A DNA stretch of 64,000 bases from Asterias rubens. Its lineage: Eukaryota. The notes under the pieces were generated by a model. The model did not search any database and was not told the DNA's origin. It saw only the letters and a program-made list of their open reading frames with translations. Made by a program: the position numbers and the translations under genes. Shown piece after piece: positions 11,498 through 56,408 of the stretch. Location of the stretch: positions 9,796,001-9,860,000 of the forward strand of contig NC_047082.1 of the NCBI RefSeq assembly GCF_902459465.1. The letters are read 5' to 3'. Each line of letters opens with the position of its first letter. Position 1 is the stretch's first letter.

Positions 11498-14400
11498 TTA
11501 GACCATGGTATGAGGCGAGTAGTTGGACTTGTAGAGGAAGTCGGAGATGATGTCATACCCTGCGTCCCTGGCAAGTTCCGACGCTGTGGCGCCCTCCTAC
11601 ATGGAAAAATTATAATAGCAATTTCTTAGATAGCGCATTTTACAATTACTGTATCAATGTGCTTTACATTAGTGCCCTGGTCATTGGGCCAATAGCATTC
11701 CTTTAATCTTTCTCAGCTCCCTGGGGAGTACAATATATACAGCCCTGAGCTGCCATGGCACTACAATGGCTTTTTTATCAATATAAACCACAAGGGAAAC
11801 TGACTGGGTAAATTTTGAAATGATTTGGGGGGTTGAACAAAGAATTGACTAGAGTAGGATTCGAACCAACGACCTCCAGATTAACGTGCCGGCGCTCTAC
11901 CAACTGAGCTATCTAGCCCTATGAACCTATAACCTCACAGGTACTCATTTCTACCCCTGGGTGAGGAGAAGCCATTGACCGATGATCATACTTCAACTCG
12001 TAGCTTTACATGTAGGCTTACCTTGTAGGAAAATGCTGACAGCGCATCGGGACCTCACAGTGATATGCGCTGGTTTATAAATATTATTATTATTATTTTT
12101 ACCTTGTTTTTAAGATTGACGTCTGCTCCTGCTTGTATCAACTGCTTGACTACTTTAAGATGACCAAATAATGCTGCTGCGTGTAACGCACTCTCACCAT
12201 TCTGTAGAATGAAACAAAAAATGTGTTTCTTAAAACCCCAAAGAAAAGAAAGACAAAAAAAGCTACTTTTCTTGATCTTATAATTTAATGTATAGGCATG
12301 ACGTACATGTTAGTGGGAATATTTGAGAGAGAACACAGGGGCTGGTCTACATGAGCATATGGTGTTGGCTTTAATAGACTTTTCAGGTTATTTAATTTCG
12401 GTTTTTTTCCCCCACGGGCAAAATCGTAGTTAAGACTAAAGTAGGAAGAGTTTAATGCCCGACATAAAAACATCATCTTCAAAATATAACGGAATACTTA
12501 TATTGCTCACCTCTAGAAGTCCTAATGACGCACCGTGACTAACCAAGTCAGAAACACAGTCGACATGACCCTTATGAGCTGCTTTGAAGAGGGGCGTGGC
12601 ACCGTCCTGTCAATCAAACATGAATACGCATGAATGGTAATTAGAATTCATGAGTTTTTTGTCGTCTTCTTCTCGAGTAAATGTATGTCAAAGCAGACAC
12701 TCTCTTGTCGCCTCATACACATCTATTAGCCCCGGGGTACCATTTGATGGTTTAAAAAGGGGGCAGGTTGTAATGATATGATCTGCTGTTTGCTCCGCTG
12801 CACCACACTCACAAGCTGGACTTGGGAACCAAGCCCCCATCGGAATATGTTGGCTTGACAGACAGTTTAGGATGAATTTGTTGGGTTCTGGATCAATTGT
12901 TGATTTGTTGCTAACAAATTCAACATATTTTTGAATACTTGTGTTATATTTCTATTAGCTATGGCTATTTGTTTTTGATTTGCATTGATGGCTTTCCATA
13001 GTTTTCCAACCTCGGTTGGCAAAAACGGGCTGTGACGTTGCAAAAGAAAGGTTTATAACCAACCCACCCCCAACCCATCTCTCAACCAGTCAATATTTCT
13101 TACCTCCCTTGACGCATCAATGTTAGCACCATGAGCGAGTAACTCCTTAATGATATCTGAATGTCCCATCTGAGAAGCAATCCACAGAGGAGTGGCCTTA
13201 TCCTAAGAAAAATCAAATACAACAAAAACCGAGTTAATTCACAATTAATGGTATTAATCAAGCCTACAGCTTACAGTGCAAGTCACTTTTTTGAGAATCA
13301 CTTTGTTTTACTACAAGAATAATCTTAAAGAAAAAAAAGAAAAATCTTACCAATCTTGGTCGGTTAACATCACCGTCTCTTTCTAGTATAAACTTGAGCA
13401 TGTTGTAGTGACCATTTTGAGACGCGATGAACAAAGAGGTCGCACCATCCTGTGCAAGAGAGAACCCACAAAGAATATAATTTCATTTTGGTTTTACCCA
13501 TCCACCGATACGTACGATAAACACTGCATTCTAAGTGCTTTACGAGGCCCGAGCAGAGCTTAAATTTGTTCTGCTTAGCACAAATAAGCAGGATACCAGT
13601 CACGGATTGGACATGTGATGTAATATTTCGGCTGGTAACCTTACTCTAGAAACATAATTTGGTTGAGCTTAGATACTTTTTTGCTGAAGGAGCTTAGCTA
13701 CTTTTTTTGGCTTACATGCAAGTAGCTCTATGAAATTGGTCCTTGATGGGATTTGAACCTACAACCCTGCATTTTAAAGCAGATGTCAAATTTTGGTCAA
13801 CGCCAAGGCCCACTTCTGTAAGGCTATTAGGCAGAAACAAAAAACTGCTCAGCAATTTTTGTTTTTGAGTGGGGAACCTGTTAAAACAGTGAAACACCAT
13901 ATGGCACTTTGGCTGGTAACCTGTTGCAGCTAAGCAAGGAATTTGTCTTCCGTATCTGAATTGGTTTCTACATCTACGGCTACGGCTGTTGCTAAGGGTG
14001 TTGCTAAGGGCATCCTATACCTCAATGCATGCTGACGCAGAAATCTAGATGTAGCCCCTGATGTAGCCGGCAATTCGGATACGGCTTTACTTACGTTCAT
14101 AGTTCTGTGTATGTTTGCCCCTCTCCCGACTAGTTCCTTGACTACATCCAGGTGATTACACTGGCAAGCGACAAACAGTGGAGTGCCACCATCCTGAAAA
14201 ACATAAAATTATAATAGATGTTAAGTTTGCATCGGGGATACACTGATGTGTGTAAGCACTGTATACTCAGTAATTTCCGGCGAGACCTGTGAAAAAAATC
14301 AGTGATAACTAAATGCATACCTTTCCTTGAATAAATTTACCAATCACAATATGGAACACGAACAAAGTAGTTTGAAAAAAGTTAGTTCCATTGGTGGATG

Positions 14401-45856: not shown

Positions 45857-47056
45857 ATGCAGGAACTTCCCAGTCATGGTCATCAGAGACCAGAGGAGAA
45901 CAAACTCAAATCCACGGCAGCTCCAACCCTTCCTGCCGGAGCAATTTTTAGAAACCGCACTCCACGTTTAATCAACCTATTGTGGTTGGACTTTCAAGGG
46001 AGGCAAGTGACACATACCAGAAACGGATTGAAATCAAGGCACAAGATGGCCATGAACACTTTCGAAGGTCATCCGTGGATATTCAGAGATCACATCACCG
46101 GCGACAAACTTGTCTGCTACACCGACGCGGAATCGCAGAAGAGAGAAGTGTTTTTCCCGATTCCATTCAGCGAAGACTACCCACATAACACTCAGGTCAA
46201 CATTATTTTACCAGGTAAAGTGTACAAAAAGGAGGAGCATTCTTCACACTGCACTATAAGGGGGGAGGGAGAAAATAAAATTGAACTGTAAAATGTTTTC
46301 CTGGCAAAGTTTCCAATTGTAGATGGAGTAAATTTGGCAGAGCTTGAATTTGAAATTTTAAAAATCACACGAAACATCTCTGTAACTGGCGTCAAATATC
46401 TTTGACCGTACATTTCTTGTTTAATCTTTTTTATTTACTGAACTTTAAGGAGATTTTTCAAAGCATACATTTTAGGAATTGGTAAAAACAATAGACTGCA
46501 GGACTTGTTTTGCGGTTGTTGACCAAGTTTTAAAAAAATGGACTCTAGCCAGTTAAACAGTGGGATTTTGAAGTCCTTGAAGGGGATATGATAATAATAA
46601 GTAGTTCTTATAAAAAGCCGATACACAATTAACGTCTCAATGTGCTTCACATTATGCCCTGATCAATGGGCCAATACCTTTCCTTTTATCTCTCTCAGTT
46701 CCCTGGGGAGTATATAGCCCTGGGCTGCCGTGGGGCTCCAGCGGCTTTTCGGAGCATGCTTTTTCGTGTGCTTACGGTTAGAAGCGCTGTGAAATAGAAA
46801 TTGCACAGTGAGCACAAAATCGGCCGCTAAGCAGCGCTATGAAATTGGGCCCTGGATATTAACTGGTAGTTTATTGAATCTGCTGTAACTAACATGAATA
46901 TTTTGTGGGTTTTGTTTTTCAGTCTACACCCTCAAGGAGAGAGCTCTCCAGGTTGTCAGAAGTTACATCAGGAGTAAAGACGATTGTGCAAAGTTACAAA
47001 TTCCAACCACACTTCAATGTGAGCTCGCTAATCCAGATGTTTCCATCAATTGGTGA
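45857..47056 (+). CDS. VHL: von Hippel-Lindau protein homolog (Elongin BC/Cul2 substrate receptor), 2 coding exons, 163 aa
   Basis: Exons 45857-46214 and 46923-47056. Beta domain with FRNRT, WLDFQG and TFEGHPWIFRD; BC-box VYTLKERALQVVRS; cullin box LQIPTTLQCEL. Confidence 0.9.
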
Positions 47057-49063: not shown

Positions 49064-50763
49064 TTATGAAGATACAACTATGGAGTCCCGAGTGCAACTT
49101 GGTTCAACGGCTTCAGCCGCTTCCCTCTGCAGTATGTTCCCTACGCCGGATAGGATTAAATCCGTTGCGACAGAAACATCGTCAACCACACAGTGCGCAT
49201 CCCCCTCGAGGGCCTTCCGGTCGGCTATGCCAGTTAAAACACCTGAACAGAGAAACAAAAATATTTGATTTGTCAGTCGACCAAATTAATTTCAAACCAA
49301 ATATATTGTATTTGAGTTACTTGGTAACGACATTTCTTCACCAAATTTTTGGGTTATGGATTGGTGACGTCCGCACTACATATAATGTGAGTTCCAACAA
49401 CAGTACAATGTTTGTCAAAGACTCGCCACCTACTAATTTTTCAGGTACATGTAGTTCTCTGATGGCGTTTAACTGCATTTTTATTTTTTTGTATAAGTGT
49501 ATCCGGCTTACTTTAGTTTCTTTTTCATTGGACGACAAACATGTTGAGAAATCCTCATTAAATAACTGAGCCGCAACTTGTGTTTTCAAATTCAAGGCGA
49601 GTGAGTGAGTTGTTGCACTGAAATTTGTAAACCAATAAGACTCAGGAGAAAAAAATTGCTTACCTATAGAGCAGCCAAGTTGAGCATTTATCCCCAGTCT
49701 GACATCACAGGGGGAATCCCCAACCATGACTGCATTCTCCGGCTGAACCCCAAGCTGGGCGCATATCATGAAAGCAGAGAGTGGGTGTGGCTTAGCAATC
49801 ATCCAATCATCATCGCCGCATACCGCGATGTCAACCAGCTTTGACACGCCTAGTCGATGTAGATTATCAAGAGTTGCTTCTCTACTATCGGACGTGTTTA
49901 TGGCGATCTGGAAGCCGCTATGTTTGAGTCTCTTGAACATGCTGGTGACATCTCCGATCGGCTTGGTCTCACCAAACCTTGCACCACCCTCCTCTATGCA
50001 TTCCCTGACAACTTTATCCGCTTCACAGGGAGACATCCCTTCTTCTTGGAGAACTTCAGACAGACACTCCTGGACCATTTCAAGAGTGCCTTCGCCAAGA
50101 ACGCCTGGTAGGATTCTCCCGGCTCCATCGTCGAATCCAACTTTTGTAAAAGCTTTGTCAGATATGATTAAGTCTGTTCTGCTCATCATGCTGTAGGTGG
50201 AGAAAAAAAACCAGATTCGGTCTTGACTCTTGAACTTTACTCTGGGACTCAATGGATTTGTGGTTGATGGGGCACCGTAAATGAAAAGTATGATGAAAGT
50301 TTCCATCAGATACCAAAATTTTGTTATTCAAGACTCTGAAGTATTCAGTAGGCAACATGAGGTTGCAAATCTTGCAATGGGGCTTTTCCTGATATAAATG
50401 GTGTCCAAACATGGAATTAGTTTTTCTGGAAATAATCAAGGGCATTATTCACGAGCACCAGTTTTGTACCTGTCCTTTTGCAAGCCTCTATAAGGGCAAG
50501 GCAGTTTTCCATTGATAAAGGGCCCTTCACGGAGATAATTATCAATCTTGATTGGAAGTTTTCAAGGGGCACTAAGGCAATCACCAGAAAATGAAACCAA
50601 ATTACCTCGTCACTATGCCTCGTATCCATGGCGCCCACTGAGAATGAACATCAATAAGGGTGCCATCTTTGTCAAAGATTATGACCGTCTTATTCCGCGC
50701 CCTCCTCTTGATTCCTGAAGTCACAGATCTAAACCACTTGGAGAATTGAGCAGTCAATGACAT
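49064..50763 (-). CDS. HAD-superfamily hydrolase (phosphoglycolate phosphatase-like fold), 3 coding exons, 287 aa, with an Arg-rich N-terminus
   Basis: Exons 50606-50763, 49664-50190 and 49064-49242. Motif I is IIFDKDGTL, motif II INTSD, motif III KPHP, motif IV VGDSPCD. There are in-frame stops just upstream of ATG 50763. Two probable upstream leader exons lie at 51419-51569 and 52778 to about 52970. Confidence 0.85.
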
Positions 50764-53700
50764 CTTGGTGAGTGGTGAAACAGTTTAAGAAGTTCAGCTG
50801 ATAAGTGTCGGTGAGAGTTTGCACTTCGATACCTGAACACAGAAAAATGTTAAGCACGAACAAATATTTAGAACAGGAAAGGCCTTGGCATCTCGGGATG
50901 GTGTAAGAGTTTGAAAACTTTCTTTAAATTGAGAGAAGATAACACCTTTAACAATACATGTAGAATTGGTATTGTTTTAATGTTTTCTCAAAAAGTAAAG
51001 CATTTCATGGAATAATATTTCAAGAGAAGTCTTTCACCCATTACCTTCTGTAAACCCTGTAAGTTATTTGTAAATCTGTAAACTTTTTTTTTCTGCACCG
51101 AAAGTGTTCAATGGCTTTAAGTTAAAATTCAATAAGACACTCTAATGAATGCAACATGAACTTTTTGAAGATGACATAGATGTTGGGAAAAAAACTCCAG
51201 CTAGGGGAAAAAAACTCCAGCTAGGAAAACAAAACATGTAGTCTGATGTGGACTGAAACCCAATCCTCATAAAAGTCACATACTCTTGTTGGGATTCGAA
51301 CGGGGGTCCACTGAGGTGAGAGCCAGGGAACAAACCACTGAGCCAAGCTGAATCCCCATGTGTCCGAATCAAAGAGAAAATTGGCAGACGATATTTTTCT
51401 TTATTTAAGGAGACAAACCTTATTGCAGGAACAATCTGAAAGGCTTCGTTTTAATCATCCATTTCTTCCACATCAAGTGAAGTGATGACGAAAGACACCG
51501 ACTCCTGAATTCCAGACATTTGTAAAGAGTCTCTAAAGACAAACGGAACCTTAAAGGAGTTGTCGTCTCCTATAAAACAAAAACAAATAGTATAATTTAA
51601 TAATCGATGTAAGAAGATACAACTTTGGTATGGGTTATAAGTCGAGCTTTATTCTAGATAATGAGAATCGACTGTTACATGCAGGTGGCCATGTTATAAG
51701 GTGATACAATGCATTATGGGAAGTAAATACTAGACTAGACACTGTATATTATCTTCCTGTCAATCAGAAAGTCTCTCTCATACAAACATTGGTGTAATGT
51801 CTATGGGGAATATGATTGAAGGACATAATTCAAGAAACTGTGATTTGAACAGCAAACTAGACGAAACACTTTATTCTAGTCATTGTGAAATCAGTGGTTA
51901 GCTTGGTAGGATTCGAACCTAACTTATTCGAACCCACAACCTTGTCATTGCAAGTGCTGCAGTCTAACCACTGGACCACTGGACCCCTGGCCCTGTGTAA
52001 ACCATGGTAATGCATGTATGGTATTGTATTGTATTTTTATCGAGGTAGTCGCTCCAGAGTAGACAGCTAGTACTACAACTAGATTAATTTCCAGGATAAC
52101 TTTCCGTATGGTGCCACCACTTTTTCACTCATTTTTACAAAAAGGGATGGATAACTTTCCGTATGGCGCCACCACTTTTATATCTCATTGAGGTAAATTA
52201 GATACTATATTATTTCATATCAAATGAAAAAGTGGTGACGCCATACGGAAACTTTTCCCTTTCCAATTTCCATTCCATCCTCCACAAACTATACTATTTT
52301 ATAATTTTATAAGGTTTCTCGTGAAGAGAGAACCTTATTCTATAGTTTCCAAGTTACTAACTAGTATACATCATGGAGCTCCATGGATGGTAACAATAAC
52401 ATTAACAAAGTGATGTAAATAATTAATAATTAAACTGTGTACTCACGTCACGGTTTCGCCCAGATCCTGGGTTTGACCACCTACTGTAGTACGTAGTGTT
52501 ATCCGATCAGTTTGTTTTCAGCAATTGCAACGAATAATATTCACAAATAGAATTGGTCAAGGTCATGCTCTACTGATCATCCGATCCGCCTGACGGAGTT
52601 CTGGTGAACTTCAATCAACCTTTGTTGACCTTAGTAAATACCCTTGCTCATAACAATGAGCAACAAACCACTGTGGTGGTTGGGAAGAAAATATGACTTT
52701 AGCTTTGCTGGGCTTGGCCTATAGGGATAGGTCAGTCATAGGCCTATAGGTCAGTCAATCTGCTGCTGTTGACTGACCGGTTGTATGTGTAGACGTCAGA
52801 GCAAAAAGACTGAACTGTAGCGAGTATGTGCGGTGACCAAGCATAAAACACACAAGGCCGCCGACACTGTCCGGCCGGTCCGTCTTCAGCGCGCGCCATG
52901 TGAACACCGGTAGCTGCGCACCACGCGAAGGACACGCAGCACAACATCCATAAGCTTTCAAAACCTCATAACAGTTTTGTAATCTAGTCAGGTCACCGTT
53001 TACAAAAGGTCCCTTACAAAACGTGTTGGATGAGTTGGTTACTAGACGTCATGTGATAGTCATGTGTACAACATTGATTATGTAATGGCGCTGTTGGTTG
53101 CTAATAATAATATAGCATAGAGCAAGCGGACCAGCATTAAAGAGCAAGGAAGGTTGTACAAACGGTGTGTGTATGCATATATGCATGAACGATCGTCCAT
53201 CAAAATAATTGGTGCCACTTTTATCGGAGAGCTTTGTGGAATTTAAACTTAAATATTGGTTTTTGACAGGCCGCGATTGTAACAAAATTTCCAAAATACA
53301 AATAGCAGCAACCATTATAGGGATAGGCTAACTGTAGGAAAGCATAGTTTATAGTATATAGCTATTTTGTGTGTTTTTATTTCGAAGTTCATTGGGAACT
53401 TTATGCCTACAGAGTAAAATTTATGTTGGGGGTTGAACTAAAGAATTGACTGGAGTGGGATTCAAACCGGAGGTCGTTGGTTCGAATCCCGTCAATTCTT
53501 TGTTCAACCACAAAAATCATGTTCAAAATTTACCCAGTCAGTTTCCCTTGTAATAGAGTGAACTTTAGTCTTGGTTCCAAGACCTTCACATGGATCAATC
53601 AACTCTCAGCTTCCACTGCGAGAGACAATCGTCAACAGAAATAAATAGAGGAAAGGTCGCCCTCTGCCTGACTATCGTGTATGCAAAAGTAACGTTTTGG

Positions 53701-53958
53701 ACCAAGACTACACTAGGGACTTTGTGTAGCTTTGAGAAACACGAGCAGCTGTCGAAACCCGTACCCACTCAAGCGACACCCTTGTGGCCACATTATTCCG
53801 GGGAGCAAAGTCCTGACCTCTGCTGCACGATTTGCACAGGGACTATAGCTCGTGGCAAGTTTGTCCCCGCATAATATAATAGCACTCACCAAACAAAGCT
53901 TGTTCCAACAATTCTCATCGACACCGTTACATAATCGCAACAATATTTTCATTAAAAA

Positions 53959-54423
53959 ATGTCTCAAGTTGCGAAGGACTTGACAACTGCCTCGCTTGAG
54001 GAGATAGTCAAGTGTCTGAATCTCACTGCACATCCAGAGGGTGGCTTTTACACGGAGAGCTACCGCTGCGATCGTAAGAGTGAGAATGGCCAGTCGCACT
54101 GTTCAGCTATCTACTACCTGATGACGAAGGAACACGGCCTAGCATGGCATAAACTCAATGGACTCGATGAAATGTTTCACTTCTATGCTGGCGCTCCGGT
54201 GGAAATCAGTCTGGCATCGCCGGAAGGTGCCTTCCTGGAGAAGAAAATCTGCGGCTTGGATATCTTCGGGGGGCAGCGACCTCAAGTGTTGGTTCCAGCT
54301 GATCATTGGCAGAGTGCGAAGTGTCTGGGGGAATGGACACTCTATGGTGTCATAGTCAGTCCTGGATTCGAGATCCAGTACTCGGAGCAAGCCCCAGATG
54401 GCTGGAAACCAACTGGGATTTAG
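53959..54423 (+). CDS. Intronless DUF985 / cupin_5 (Cff1/YML079W-family) cupin, 154 aa
   Basis: Single ORF with LxLxxHPEGGFY, SAIYYL, WHKL..DEMFHFYAG, RPQVLVPADHWQSA and VSPGFE, the family-diagnostic motifs. Confidence 0.88.
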   Translation: MSQVAKDLTTASLEEIVKCLNLTAHPEGGFYTESYRCDRKSENGQSHCSAIYYLMTKEHGLAWHKLNGLDEMFHFYAGAPVEISLASPEGAFLEKKICGLDIFGGQRPQVLVPADHWQSAKCLGEWTLYGVIVSPGFEIQYSEQAPDGWKPTGI

Positions 54424-55875
54424 AGTGATGGGTCTTCGAGTCTTCTTTTGAGTCCAACATCTACTCTTCAAAATGATGTTTCGGGGAGGATTTGGCGCAT
54501 CTCACGCACGGCCAACAGGTCATCTCCTCACATCTCAGCTATAGTCTCATTGACTTACGGAGGACAAAACTATACTCTTCTACATCTTGATGCCTTCCAT
54601 TTTTCAGATAAACTGGAACTAAACAATGAACATTATCAAAATCAAAAGGACCATAACGGCTGAGCAATTTTGAGCAGGTCGACATTGAACTCTTCATCTT
54701 GAACTTCACTCAACCCATTTCCTTTTTTTTAGTAAATGAATCTAGAGACATGCTTGTTTTTCAGTTATTTGTCAATCTTTTCTTGCGATATAAAACATAA
54801 TAATTATGCCTGCTTTCCGAAACTATAATGTAATTTATACTGAACTATAGGTTTGGGTCGAATTTTTCCACTTTTGCCGGGCTAGTCTTCGATCAAGTGG
54901 CTTGATGTGATTATTATTTTTTTTTATTAATGGTTGTTTTAATCTGAATAAAAAACAACCAAAAGGTTGACAACATTCAAATTTATAAAGAAAAATGGAA
55001 TTCACAATAAACAGGCAAAATCTATACATAAAATACACAAACATTAAAAGAAAAAAATCATTAATTAGCAGAAACACGCCATAAAAAAAATGACAAAGGC
55101 GTACATAAAAAAAACAGACAAAAAGTTTAAAATTTGCCAAGCAGCCCCAAAAATTATTTCAATATTCTAGCTTATGAGGGTATCGTGGATTTACTATAGC
55201 GCTCAGTTTTGCATTTAGGTATTTGAAATCTAGTAGTTGAGGCTGCTATGAGTTGCATTGTTAGTGGTGTTGAAGTTATTTTTTAACAACCATGGGGGAG
55301 AGGGGGTTTTTTAACAGGTTGACTTGGTATTTTGTTTGCCTTGTATAAAACATGTTCTTCTAATCGTTTAACTTCAAAAAATAAAGTTGATCTCCGAACT
55401 TCAGTTCGGATTTTTTTTATTGAACTATTAAAAGTATGGATACACTTTACCTTTTTTGTTTTCGTATTATTTCATCCCAGATATACATGTAGTTGTTAAT
55501 AAAATGGACTCGATAAAGCTTTTTGTTTTAATAATTATTACAAATTTATGTTCAAAAAGCCTCCTTGTTTAATTCGCTGTTGCAAACTGATTTAATACCC
55601 TAAGTACCTTTGGCATAATGGAAAACAACTTGGTGGATTGACTTTTTGATCTCTAGCCGCTAGAAAGATGTTAAAACGCAAATTTATGATAGATTATTAA
55701 CTTACAAGCTCAAAGTCCCACGGCCCTCATATTATTTGGATTTGATCAACAGAAAGTTCGTGGTTTGTTTGTTGTACTTACCTAGATCACTGCCATGCTT
55801 GTACTAGACCGTCTCCAAGCCCCCCCCCCCCCACACTTTTTTTGTTTGGGGGGGGGGGGGGAGTGAGCGAAGCCA

Positions 55876-56264
55876 GCCGGTGTCAGATGCAATTATGTCC
55901 GCCATGCAATACTGTCCGCTCCGGACACTTGTGCGTATGCAATTGTGTCCGGGGCAATGCAAAAACCGTCCGGCGGACGTGTACAAAAACATGACTGCGC
56001 ATGTGAGTGTGCATGCACTTACTCTATGACTGAATTAACGTATTATGATTGCAGCGAATACCAACGGCCGGACATTCATGACATGCACTTTAATATTAAC
56101 TTGTAAAAAAACAATGGCGAGGGTGTTCCGTCGACCAAGGGCGTTTAATTTACTGCAAGGACGGTTTTGCACGGGGCGGACACAACTGCATATGCATTAT
56201 GCAGCAGCGTCCGGGCGGACACGATTGCATATGCAAAACCGTGCATGCAACATAACACACCGGC
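55876..56264. mobile_element. Long-palindrome MITE-like element immediately upstream of TCEA exon 1
   Basis: Ends gccggtgt..acaccggc; the arms carry reiterated gcatatgcaa / gtccg..cggac motifs in inverted orientation. Confidence 0.55.
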
Positions 56265-56408
56265 GCCCACCACAGATTAATTGAGGGCGCCATTCTTTTT
56301 CTGCACTGGACGAAAATTCAGCTTTACGTTTTGGCGGCTTCGAGCACATCACCAACCAAGGTTTATTTTGATTTCTTTCAAGCCTACGTTTGTTGTTTCG
56401 ATCTCGCG

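Follow-up and report, generated by a model that had tools for sequence, protein, structure and literature searches.

An old bacterial-type DUF985 cupin gene in echinoderms, with plausible Cff1-like activity

The stretch analysed here, called the window below, is 64,000 nucleotides of the genome of the starfish Asterias rubens (RefSeq assembly GCF_902459465.1, contig NC_047082.1, positions 9,796,001 to 9,860,000 of the forward strand). At 53959..54423 on its + strand lies a single-exon coding sequence (CDS) for a cupin of the DUF985 family, of the subtype to which the Agrobacterium protein Atu3615 belongs. It is a well-supported, old bacterial-type gene common to sea stars and crinoids, and to judge from the sequence of its product an activity like that of yeast Cff1p, which is needed to make a mimic of the bacterial signal autoinducer 2 (AI-2), is plausible. 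We regard an ancient transfer from an alphaproteobacterium to an echinoderm as likely, and the favoured account as a whole, in which an ancient bacterial gene serves echinoderms as a Cff1-like enzyme, as slightly likelier to be right than wrong.

The cupin gene and its transcript

The open reading frame (ORF) runs uninterrupted from ATG to TAG (154 codons plus stop), and its product matches Pfam PF06172 (Cupin_5/DUF985) over model positions 1-135 of 139 with 120.9 bits where the gathering cut-off is 25 (E = 5.4e-35); that it belongs to the family is virtually certain, and NCBIfam has no model for it. The protein carries the motifs HPEGG, WH...DE..HFYAG and, at its C-terminus, APDGWKP. Read directly, its N-terminus bears no extension or signal peptide-like stretch, and so the protein, of about 17 kDa, should be cytosolic. 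The AlphaFold model (predicted local distance difference test 96.1, predicted template modelling score 0.88) is an RmlC-like cupin jelly roll, and in Foldseek the five DUF985 proteins of known structure take the top places, namely 1znp (Agrobacterium Atu3615; template modelling score (TM) 0.85, root-mean-square deviation 1.6 Å, 42-43% identity), 1yud (Shewanella SO0799; TM 0.82, 34%), 3m3i (Leishmania; TM 0.81, 25-26%), 3loi (amphioxus BbDUF985; TM 0.79, 28%) and 1xe7 (yeast YML079W, which is Cff1p; TM 0.74, 21-23%).

Sequence scores set the protein closest to the bacterial members. In phmmer comparisons it scores 115 bits with Atu3615 (E = 2.6e-32), 75 with Shewanella SO0799, 41 with amphioxus BbDUF985 (E = 1.9e-9), 35 with the Leishmania protein and 19 with yeast YML079W (E = 0.014), and it is about 42-50% identical to alphaproteobacterial proteins as against 21-28% to the amphioxus, Leishmania and yeast ones. 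Atu3615, itself a structural-genomics "hypothetical protein", and its orthologues in Rhizobium, Methylosinus, Pseudovibrio and Roseovarius align with it at that higher level over the whole protein; they are likewise about 140-155 amino acids (aa) long and share HPEGG, WH, HFYAG and a C-terminal "A..W.P". Yeast Cff1p (1xe7/1xe8) has the same Pfam family and fold, but it carries about 50 extra residues in an N-terminal extension and inserts, and belongs to another subfamily. An earlier note on this DNA, made from the letters alone, had described a compact, bacteria-like DUF985 cupin of 154 aa with the motifs listed above, closer to proteobacterial proteins than to the yeast one, and the ORF, the Pfam match and the phmmer scores agree with it on each of these points.

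The gene is real and expressed, which we hold to be close to certain. In raw reads from two runs, RNA depth is 3-28x over about 53.8-55.14 kb and about 0 in the unique flanks 52970-53363 and 55334-55727; 3' of bin 54940-55136 it falls to about 0-2, with weak coverage to about 55310. Transcriptome-like contigs from two further runs span the CDS. RNA contigs and reads are continuous over the CDS, no splice joint is listed inside the gene, and the poly(A) signals AATAAA at 54947 and 55006 and ATTAAA at 55043 (located by script) lie shortly 5' of the drop in coverage. Thus, the cupin mRNA is unspliced and about 1.3 kb long, with a 3' untranslated region (UTR) of about 0.7 kb (54424..55140, + strand, end approximate) and a 5' UTR of about 150 nt (53812..53958, + strand), whose approximate start is taken from an RNA-run contig beginning at 53812 and from the rise in depth in bin 53758-53954; an intron within the 5' UTR is possible. 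Among the RNA-read differences listed, the two best supported in the CDS are both synonymous and at third positions (54003, GAG to GAA, Glu15; 54141, CTA to CTG, Leu61). Among the differences listed the UTRs hold many more than the CDS, which is suggestive only.

A bacteria-like protein encoded without introns might come from bacterial contamination or an assembly artefact, an explanation to which we give almost no credence, as the repeats, the neighbouring genes, the features of the mRNA and the independent assemblies of other species exclude it. The gene is single-copy in the 417.6-Mb, 150-contig A. rubens assembly, and its home contig is at least 15.2 Mb long. Dispersed host repeats, with many copies in the genome, lie within 0.4-1.3 kb of it. 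One, at 53364..53560 about 400 bp 5' of the CDS, has 90 scored matches and 1092 first-look candidates over many chromosomes of the same genome, and very high RNA and contig depth in its bin; the other, at 55728..56318, 1.3 kb 3' of the stop codon, has 80 and 1160, with a core of about 365 bp that is 76-82% identical between copies. The argument against contamination that the earlier note had drawn from flanking repeats therefore holds, each having over 1000 such candidates. Multi-exon animal genes adjoin the cupin, the same upstream neighbours recur in the independent Patiria and Acanthaster assemblies, the transcript has eukaryotic UTRs and AATAAA signals, and the stretch is present in sequencing runs from 8 studies.

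Echinoderm orthologues and phylogenetic placement

HMMER, run exhaustively over 1.84 billion cluster representatives, returned 3203 matches at E<=1e-3, only three of them at E<=1e-30, and the best was Patiria miniata XP_038057738. Further relatives were found with a profile of four starfish sequences and by a search with a crinoid protein. The named echinoderm relatives are Patiria miniata LOC119729232 (two forms), Acanthaster planci LOC110979852 and, among crinoids, Anneissia japonica LOC117123616 and a protein of Antedon mediterranea; NCBI names the echinoderm proteins either uncharacterised or DUF985. A 21.8-kb contig from ENA, with sparse gene calls, holds two tandem single-exon copies (P0002 and P0269), with which the window protein groups at support 100/98. 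The echinoderm orthologues are 48-54% identical to the window protein, and the two crinoid proteins, which have HIEGG or HVEGG where it has HPEGG, are 65% identical to each other. The named matches highest in rank outside the echinoderms are all from Alphaproteobacteria. No echinoid, holothuroid, ophiuroid, hemichordate or other animal protein is among the close matches, which come from general searches rather than from a dedicated search of the genomes of those groups; echinoids, holothuroids and ophiuroids may either have lost the gene or simply be unsampled.

Nothing interrupts the cupin CDS in Patiria, Acanthaster or Antedon. In Anneissia (L020:10001-11088) 144 of the 146 codons are contiguous and the NCBI model draws the last two from a second, downstream exon; the contiguous frame continues differently from that model, so either an intron has been gained or the model is an artefact. 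Tandem copies arise and decay repeatedly in the family: Patiria keeps an intact pair (L002, 8005-8544 and 10001-10627) and, at 8733-8930, a degenerate fragment; in Acanthaster the second copy (L021, about 11326-12304) is degenerate; and the ENA contig has the tandem pair already mentioned.

Synteny in other echinoderms, which the earlier note had proposed to examine, is conserved on the upstream side. The order VHL(+)-HAD(-)-cupin(+) is identical in Acanthaster and the window, and HAD(-)-cupin(+) is found in Patiria also; the crinoid loci have other neighbours and the HAD gene does not adjoin the cupin there. TMEM14 and NSE1 lie 3' of the cupin in Patiria and Acanthaster, and because tblastx gave no convincing match to either in the remaining 9.5 kb of the window, our claim of synteny is limited to the upstream side.

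Synonymous sites have reached saturation in comparisons across orders and classes, and the proteins are still about 50% identical. The ratio of nonsynonymous to synonymous substitution rates (dN/dS) is usable for Patiria copy A against Acanthaster only, all inter-order pairs being saturated, and for that pair it is 0.16 with dS 1.15 (Nei-Gojobori). As the gene is common to sea stars and crinoids, it is older than their split. Textbook dating puts the split in the Ordovician or earlier, at least about 450-480 million years (Myr) ago.

Trees were built with IQ-TREE (LG+C20+F+G4 with PMSF) as a quick tree of 193 rows and careful trees of 83 and 64 rows. The yeast, amphioxus, Leishmania, Saccoglossus and coral DUF985 proteins stand outside these trees, and their distances were judged from phmmer and Foldseek scores. 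The echinoderm rows form one clade in every tree (99 SH-aLRT in the 193-row tree, 100/100 for 7 rows in the 83-row tree and 100/99 for 8 rows in the 64-row tree) on a long stem branch of 0.68-0.76. In the 83-row tree this clade branches inside a larger one of 62 rows with support 95/90, which holds every named alphaproteobacterium but one, a Methylocystaceae sequence that attaches just outside. The named bacteria in the enclosing clade are all Alphaproteobacteria (Rhizobium, Methylosinus, Methylocapsa, Methylocella, Methylobacterium, Hyphomicrobiales metagenome-assembled genomes, Hyphomonadaceae, Roseovarius and Pseudovibrio), and it also includes a small clade of Pezizomycotina; Bacteroidota, Acidobacteriota, Balneolota, Latescibacterota and Oligoflexus lie on the other side of the tree. 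When Antedon, Agrobacterium and more Rhizobiaceae were added (64 rows), the maximum-likelihood (ML) sister of the echinoderms was, with weak support, a bacterial contig on which the cupin is linked to gloB (P0271), followed by Agrobacterium, Rhizobium, Gellertiella and Pseudovibrio. Within the echinoderm clade the crinoids are sisters and group beside the sea-star copies, and sea-star monophyly is not rejected in the approximately unbiased (AU) test (p 0.21); the internal pattern thus fits vertical descent.

These results bear on a recent acquisition specific to A. rubens, which the intronless CDS and a third-position GC content slightly above that of neighbouring genes (0.57 vs 0.44-0.50) might suggest, and which is very improbable. 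Orthologues occur in shared sea-star synteny in Patiria and Acanthaster and in two crinoids, synonymous sites are saturated, the long stem separates the clade from all bacteria, and the CpG observed/expected ratio of the CDS (0.65) equals that of the neighbouring genes, a depletion as strong as the host's. Recent species-specific acquisition is refuted by the synteny and the echinoderm clade together, and so a gain particular to one species, as the earlier note's stress on the only intronless CDS might suggest, gives way to one that dates at least to the echinoderm common ancestor.

An old, vertically inherited eukaryotic gene, present in the opisthokont ancestor, possibly derived from the mitochondrial endosymbiont and lost in nearly all animals and most fungi, has more to be said for it, and we consider it unlikely. 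The AU test does not reject a tree that unites echinoderms and the Pezizomycotina clade (p 0.517), and that tree is in fact better by 1.7 log-likelihood units. DUF985 proteins are scattered among marine animals (amphioxus 3loi, Saccoglossus, and an Acropora coral transcript annotated YML079W), and an endosymbiotic origin would also yield an alphaproteobacterial affinity. However, vertical inheritance requires very many independent losses, and with the starfish protein the amphioxus, Leishmania and yeast ones share only 21-28% identity, as against 43-50% for Alphaproteobacteria. The fungal and echinoderm clades are apart in the free ML trees, and both have long branches, which favours a false union. 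Moreover, the fungal members are few (Aspergillus karnatakaensis, Metarhizium, Amphichorda and Claviceps; P0080, P0116, P0121 and P0134) and Atu3615-like, with E values of 1e-40 and 7e-34 to 1znp and about 1e-3 to yeast 1xe7, and so are not of the canonical fungal Cff1 lineage; they may represent a separate bacterial transfer into fungi. These fungal proteins carry N-terminal extensions of 40-100 aa.

Ancient transfer from an alphaproteobacterium is therefore our preferred reading of the origin, and other routes, such as transfer between eukaryotes, take up what probability remains beside it and vertical inheritance. The donor would have been an alphaproteobacterium, probably a Rhizobiales-like one, and the echinoderm lineage would have acquired the gene ahead of the divergence of sea stars from crinoids; it would later have gained eukaryotic UTRs and poly(A) signals while its composition ameliorated, and would have been retained under purifying selection with occasional tandem duplication. 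Bacterial relatives sit in operons (gloB-cupin in Rhizobiales), whereas the gene in echinoderms gives a monocistronic mRNA whose UTRs are long. Of the earlier note's proposal of horizontal acquisition, an integrated and expressed gene of alphaproteobacterial type has been upheld, with transfer as the best reading and a place inside the 95/90 clade whose named bacteria are all Alphaproteobacteria; what has not been secured is the rejection of a eukaryotic clade of echinoderms and fungi.

Active site, gene context and possible roles

Aligned to yeast 1xe7 through a profile of 44 sequences, starfish Glu27 (GAG codon, 54037..54039, + strand) is the counterpart of catalytic E44 of Cff1p (chain residue 44 of 1xe7), and His64 (CAT codon, 54148..54150, + strand) that of H96. 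Glu27 is invariant in the 44 aligned family members and His64 is at least 90% conserved there. In yeast Cff1p the change E44A abolishes production of 4-hydroxy-5-methylfuran-3(2H)-one (MHF), the AI-2 mimic, and equivalent mutants do likewise in two other fungi (PMC8092285); both the E44 and the H96 positions are needed in the Cff1p of S. cerevisiae and C. neoformans (PMC13267403). The earlier note was right that the essential glutamate of HxEGG is intact, though it numbered the residue 28 rather than 27, and the second required residue is present as well.

Because the starfish cupin has the two residues that yeast Cff1p cannot do without, MHF synthesis by it is plausible, and from its sequence we regard MHF-forming activity as a reasonable inference to which we give a little less than an even chance. 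Homologues down to 24% identity complement a yeast cff1-delta strain, among them proteins from bacteria, an archaeon, an oomycete, a giant virus and the acorn worm Saccoglossus kowalevskii (PMC8092285). By analogy with the Cff1 family, the Glu27/His64 pair in the cupin pocket would convert an intermediate derived from a sugar phosphate, with MHF as product or by-product.

The gene context of the bacterial relatives bears on what such an enzyme might be for. In each of the three Rhizobiales loci examined, those of the Agrobacterium Atu3615 cluster, of Methylosinus and of the contig closest to the echinoderms (L024:3231-4441, L025:3231-4465 and L022:1473-2671), the cupin is translationally coupled, with overlapping stop and start codons, to a gloB gene directly 5' of it that encodes hydroxyacylglutathione hydrolase, or glyoxalase II (Lactamase_B+HAGH_C), and a divergent Methyltransf_11 gene lies upstream of the pair. 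In Roseovarius the DUF985 gene is 1 bp 3' of enolase and adjoins pgi, pgl and zwf (L026:2722-8177). This linkage to gloB and sugar-phosphate genes, along with an amphioxus DUF985 structure that has GDP bound, suggests a metabolic role, in which the family would handle a reactive sugar-derived intermediate and MHF would perhaps be a by-product rather than a signal.

Ordinary metabolism of that kind, the handling of reactive sugar phosphates and dicarbonyls or of nucleotide sugars with no signal mimicry, is thus a real possibility for the starfish gene, which we put at about one chance in three. The JGI family name ("predicted cupin superfamily sugar epimerase"), the absence of a signal peptide-like N-terminus and the HAD phosphatase that is the conserved sea-star neighbour all point the same way as the bacterial contexts and the GDP-bound crystal. 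Against it, a bacterial gene neighbourhood does not fix the chemistry, and members from all domains restore MHF in yeast (PMC8092285). The metabolic and signalling readings share the same chemistry and differ in the target of selection.

A selected role in manipulating bacterial quorum sensing is speculation from family membership, and we think it improbable. In its fullest form, which is no likelier, a Rhizobiales-type gene was captured more than 450 Myr ago, possibly from a surface or subcuticular associate, and release of MHF tunes the quorum sensing, chemotaxis or biofilm formation of epidermal bacteria. If this were true, an animal would be manipulating bacterial quorum sensing with a gene that came from bacteria. 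If MHF is made, sea stars and feather stars would have, through a bacterial gene, a genome-encoded means to use the most widespread interspecies bacterial signal, with a bearing on how marine invertebrates manage their surface and subcuticular microbiota, on biofouling and on diseases in which microbes have a part; the gene would also be a well-dated case of a bacterial gene that a deuterostome phylum has retained since no later than the common ancestor of echinoderms.

The family is not new to animals, in which DUF985 proteins are already known, with an amphioxus structure in 2010 and an acorn-worm function in 2021. BbDUF985 of the amphioxus Branchiostoma belcheri (3loi apo, 3lzz GDP-bound) is a deuterostome DUF985 cupin with Ser in place of the motif Glu (HPaSGG), unlike starfish Glu27; this substitution may leave it without activity of the Cff1 type, and its crystal form with GDP bound fits that and suggests a different ligand. 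The Saccoglossus kowalevskii homologue, from another ambulacrarian, restores AI-2-mimic activity to yeast cff1-delta and is 38% identical to yeast Cff1p (PMC8092285); it is absent among the echinoderm-clade matches in every search and is probably of another subtype and origin than the echinoderm cupin. In the literature searched we found no publication on echinoderm DUF985 genes or their bacterial affinity, the main text of a compendium of metazoan horizontal gene transfers does not mention the window cupin gene, and the supplement text of the 2021 mBio paper gives no echinoderm or Saccoglossus accession (PMC8092285). This analysis adds the echinoderm clade, with its age and its affinity to Alphaproteobacteria, and the finding that genes of its bacterial relatives are linked to gloB, a pointer to a metabolic role.

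Several points weigh against the favoured account, an ancient bacterial gene acting as a Cff1-like enzyme. Its placement among Alphaproteobacteria depends on an alignment of about 150 columns, the immediate sister relations have weak support (74/72 and 67/83), the union with Pezizomycotina scores slightly better than the free placement, and Patiria copy B falls outside the group of crinoids and the other sea-star copies; absence from echinoids, holothuroids, ophiuroids and hemichordates means that none was among the matches. On function, 2 of the 13 homologues tested failed to complement yeast cff1-delta (PMC8092285), and the literature on Cff1 yielded no member of the Atu3615-like subtype with an MHF test. 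Finally, although expression, another matter that the earlier note had raised, is evident from the reads of two runs, the RNA libraries are not strand-specific and are of unspecified tissue.

Neighbouring genes and repeats

The upstream neighbour kept in sea stars is a multi-exon gene for a HAD-family hydrolase at 49148..50707 on the - strand. Its ORF at 49338-50306 (322 aa) matches Pfam HAD_2/Hydrolase, and could have been taken for a second intronless gene; this is ruled out by flanking exons, since tblastx to Patiria gives exon blocks at 49148-49261, 49654-50210 and 50602-50707. The ORF is the large central exon, with weak similarity to phosphoglycolate phosphatases and N-acylneuraminate-9-phosphatases. 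The cupin had been called the only intronless CDS among seven genes in the window; RNA confirms that it is unspliced, and the rest of that statement extends as far as the HAD gene, the sole neighbour checked. The second conserved upstream neighbour is represented by a VHL beta-domain exon at 45857..46291 on the + strand (Pfam PF01847, E = 4.7e-14).

Between the HAD gene and the cupin, window positions 51000-51196 are a repeat with RNA depth in the thousands, in which a 1-base deletion variant at 51037 is carried by about two-thirds of the reads; it is probably an abundant transcribed element resembling a short interspersed nuclear element (SINE).

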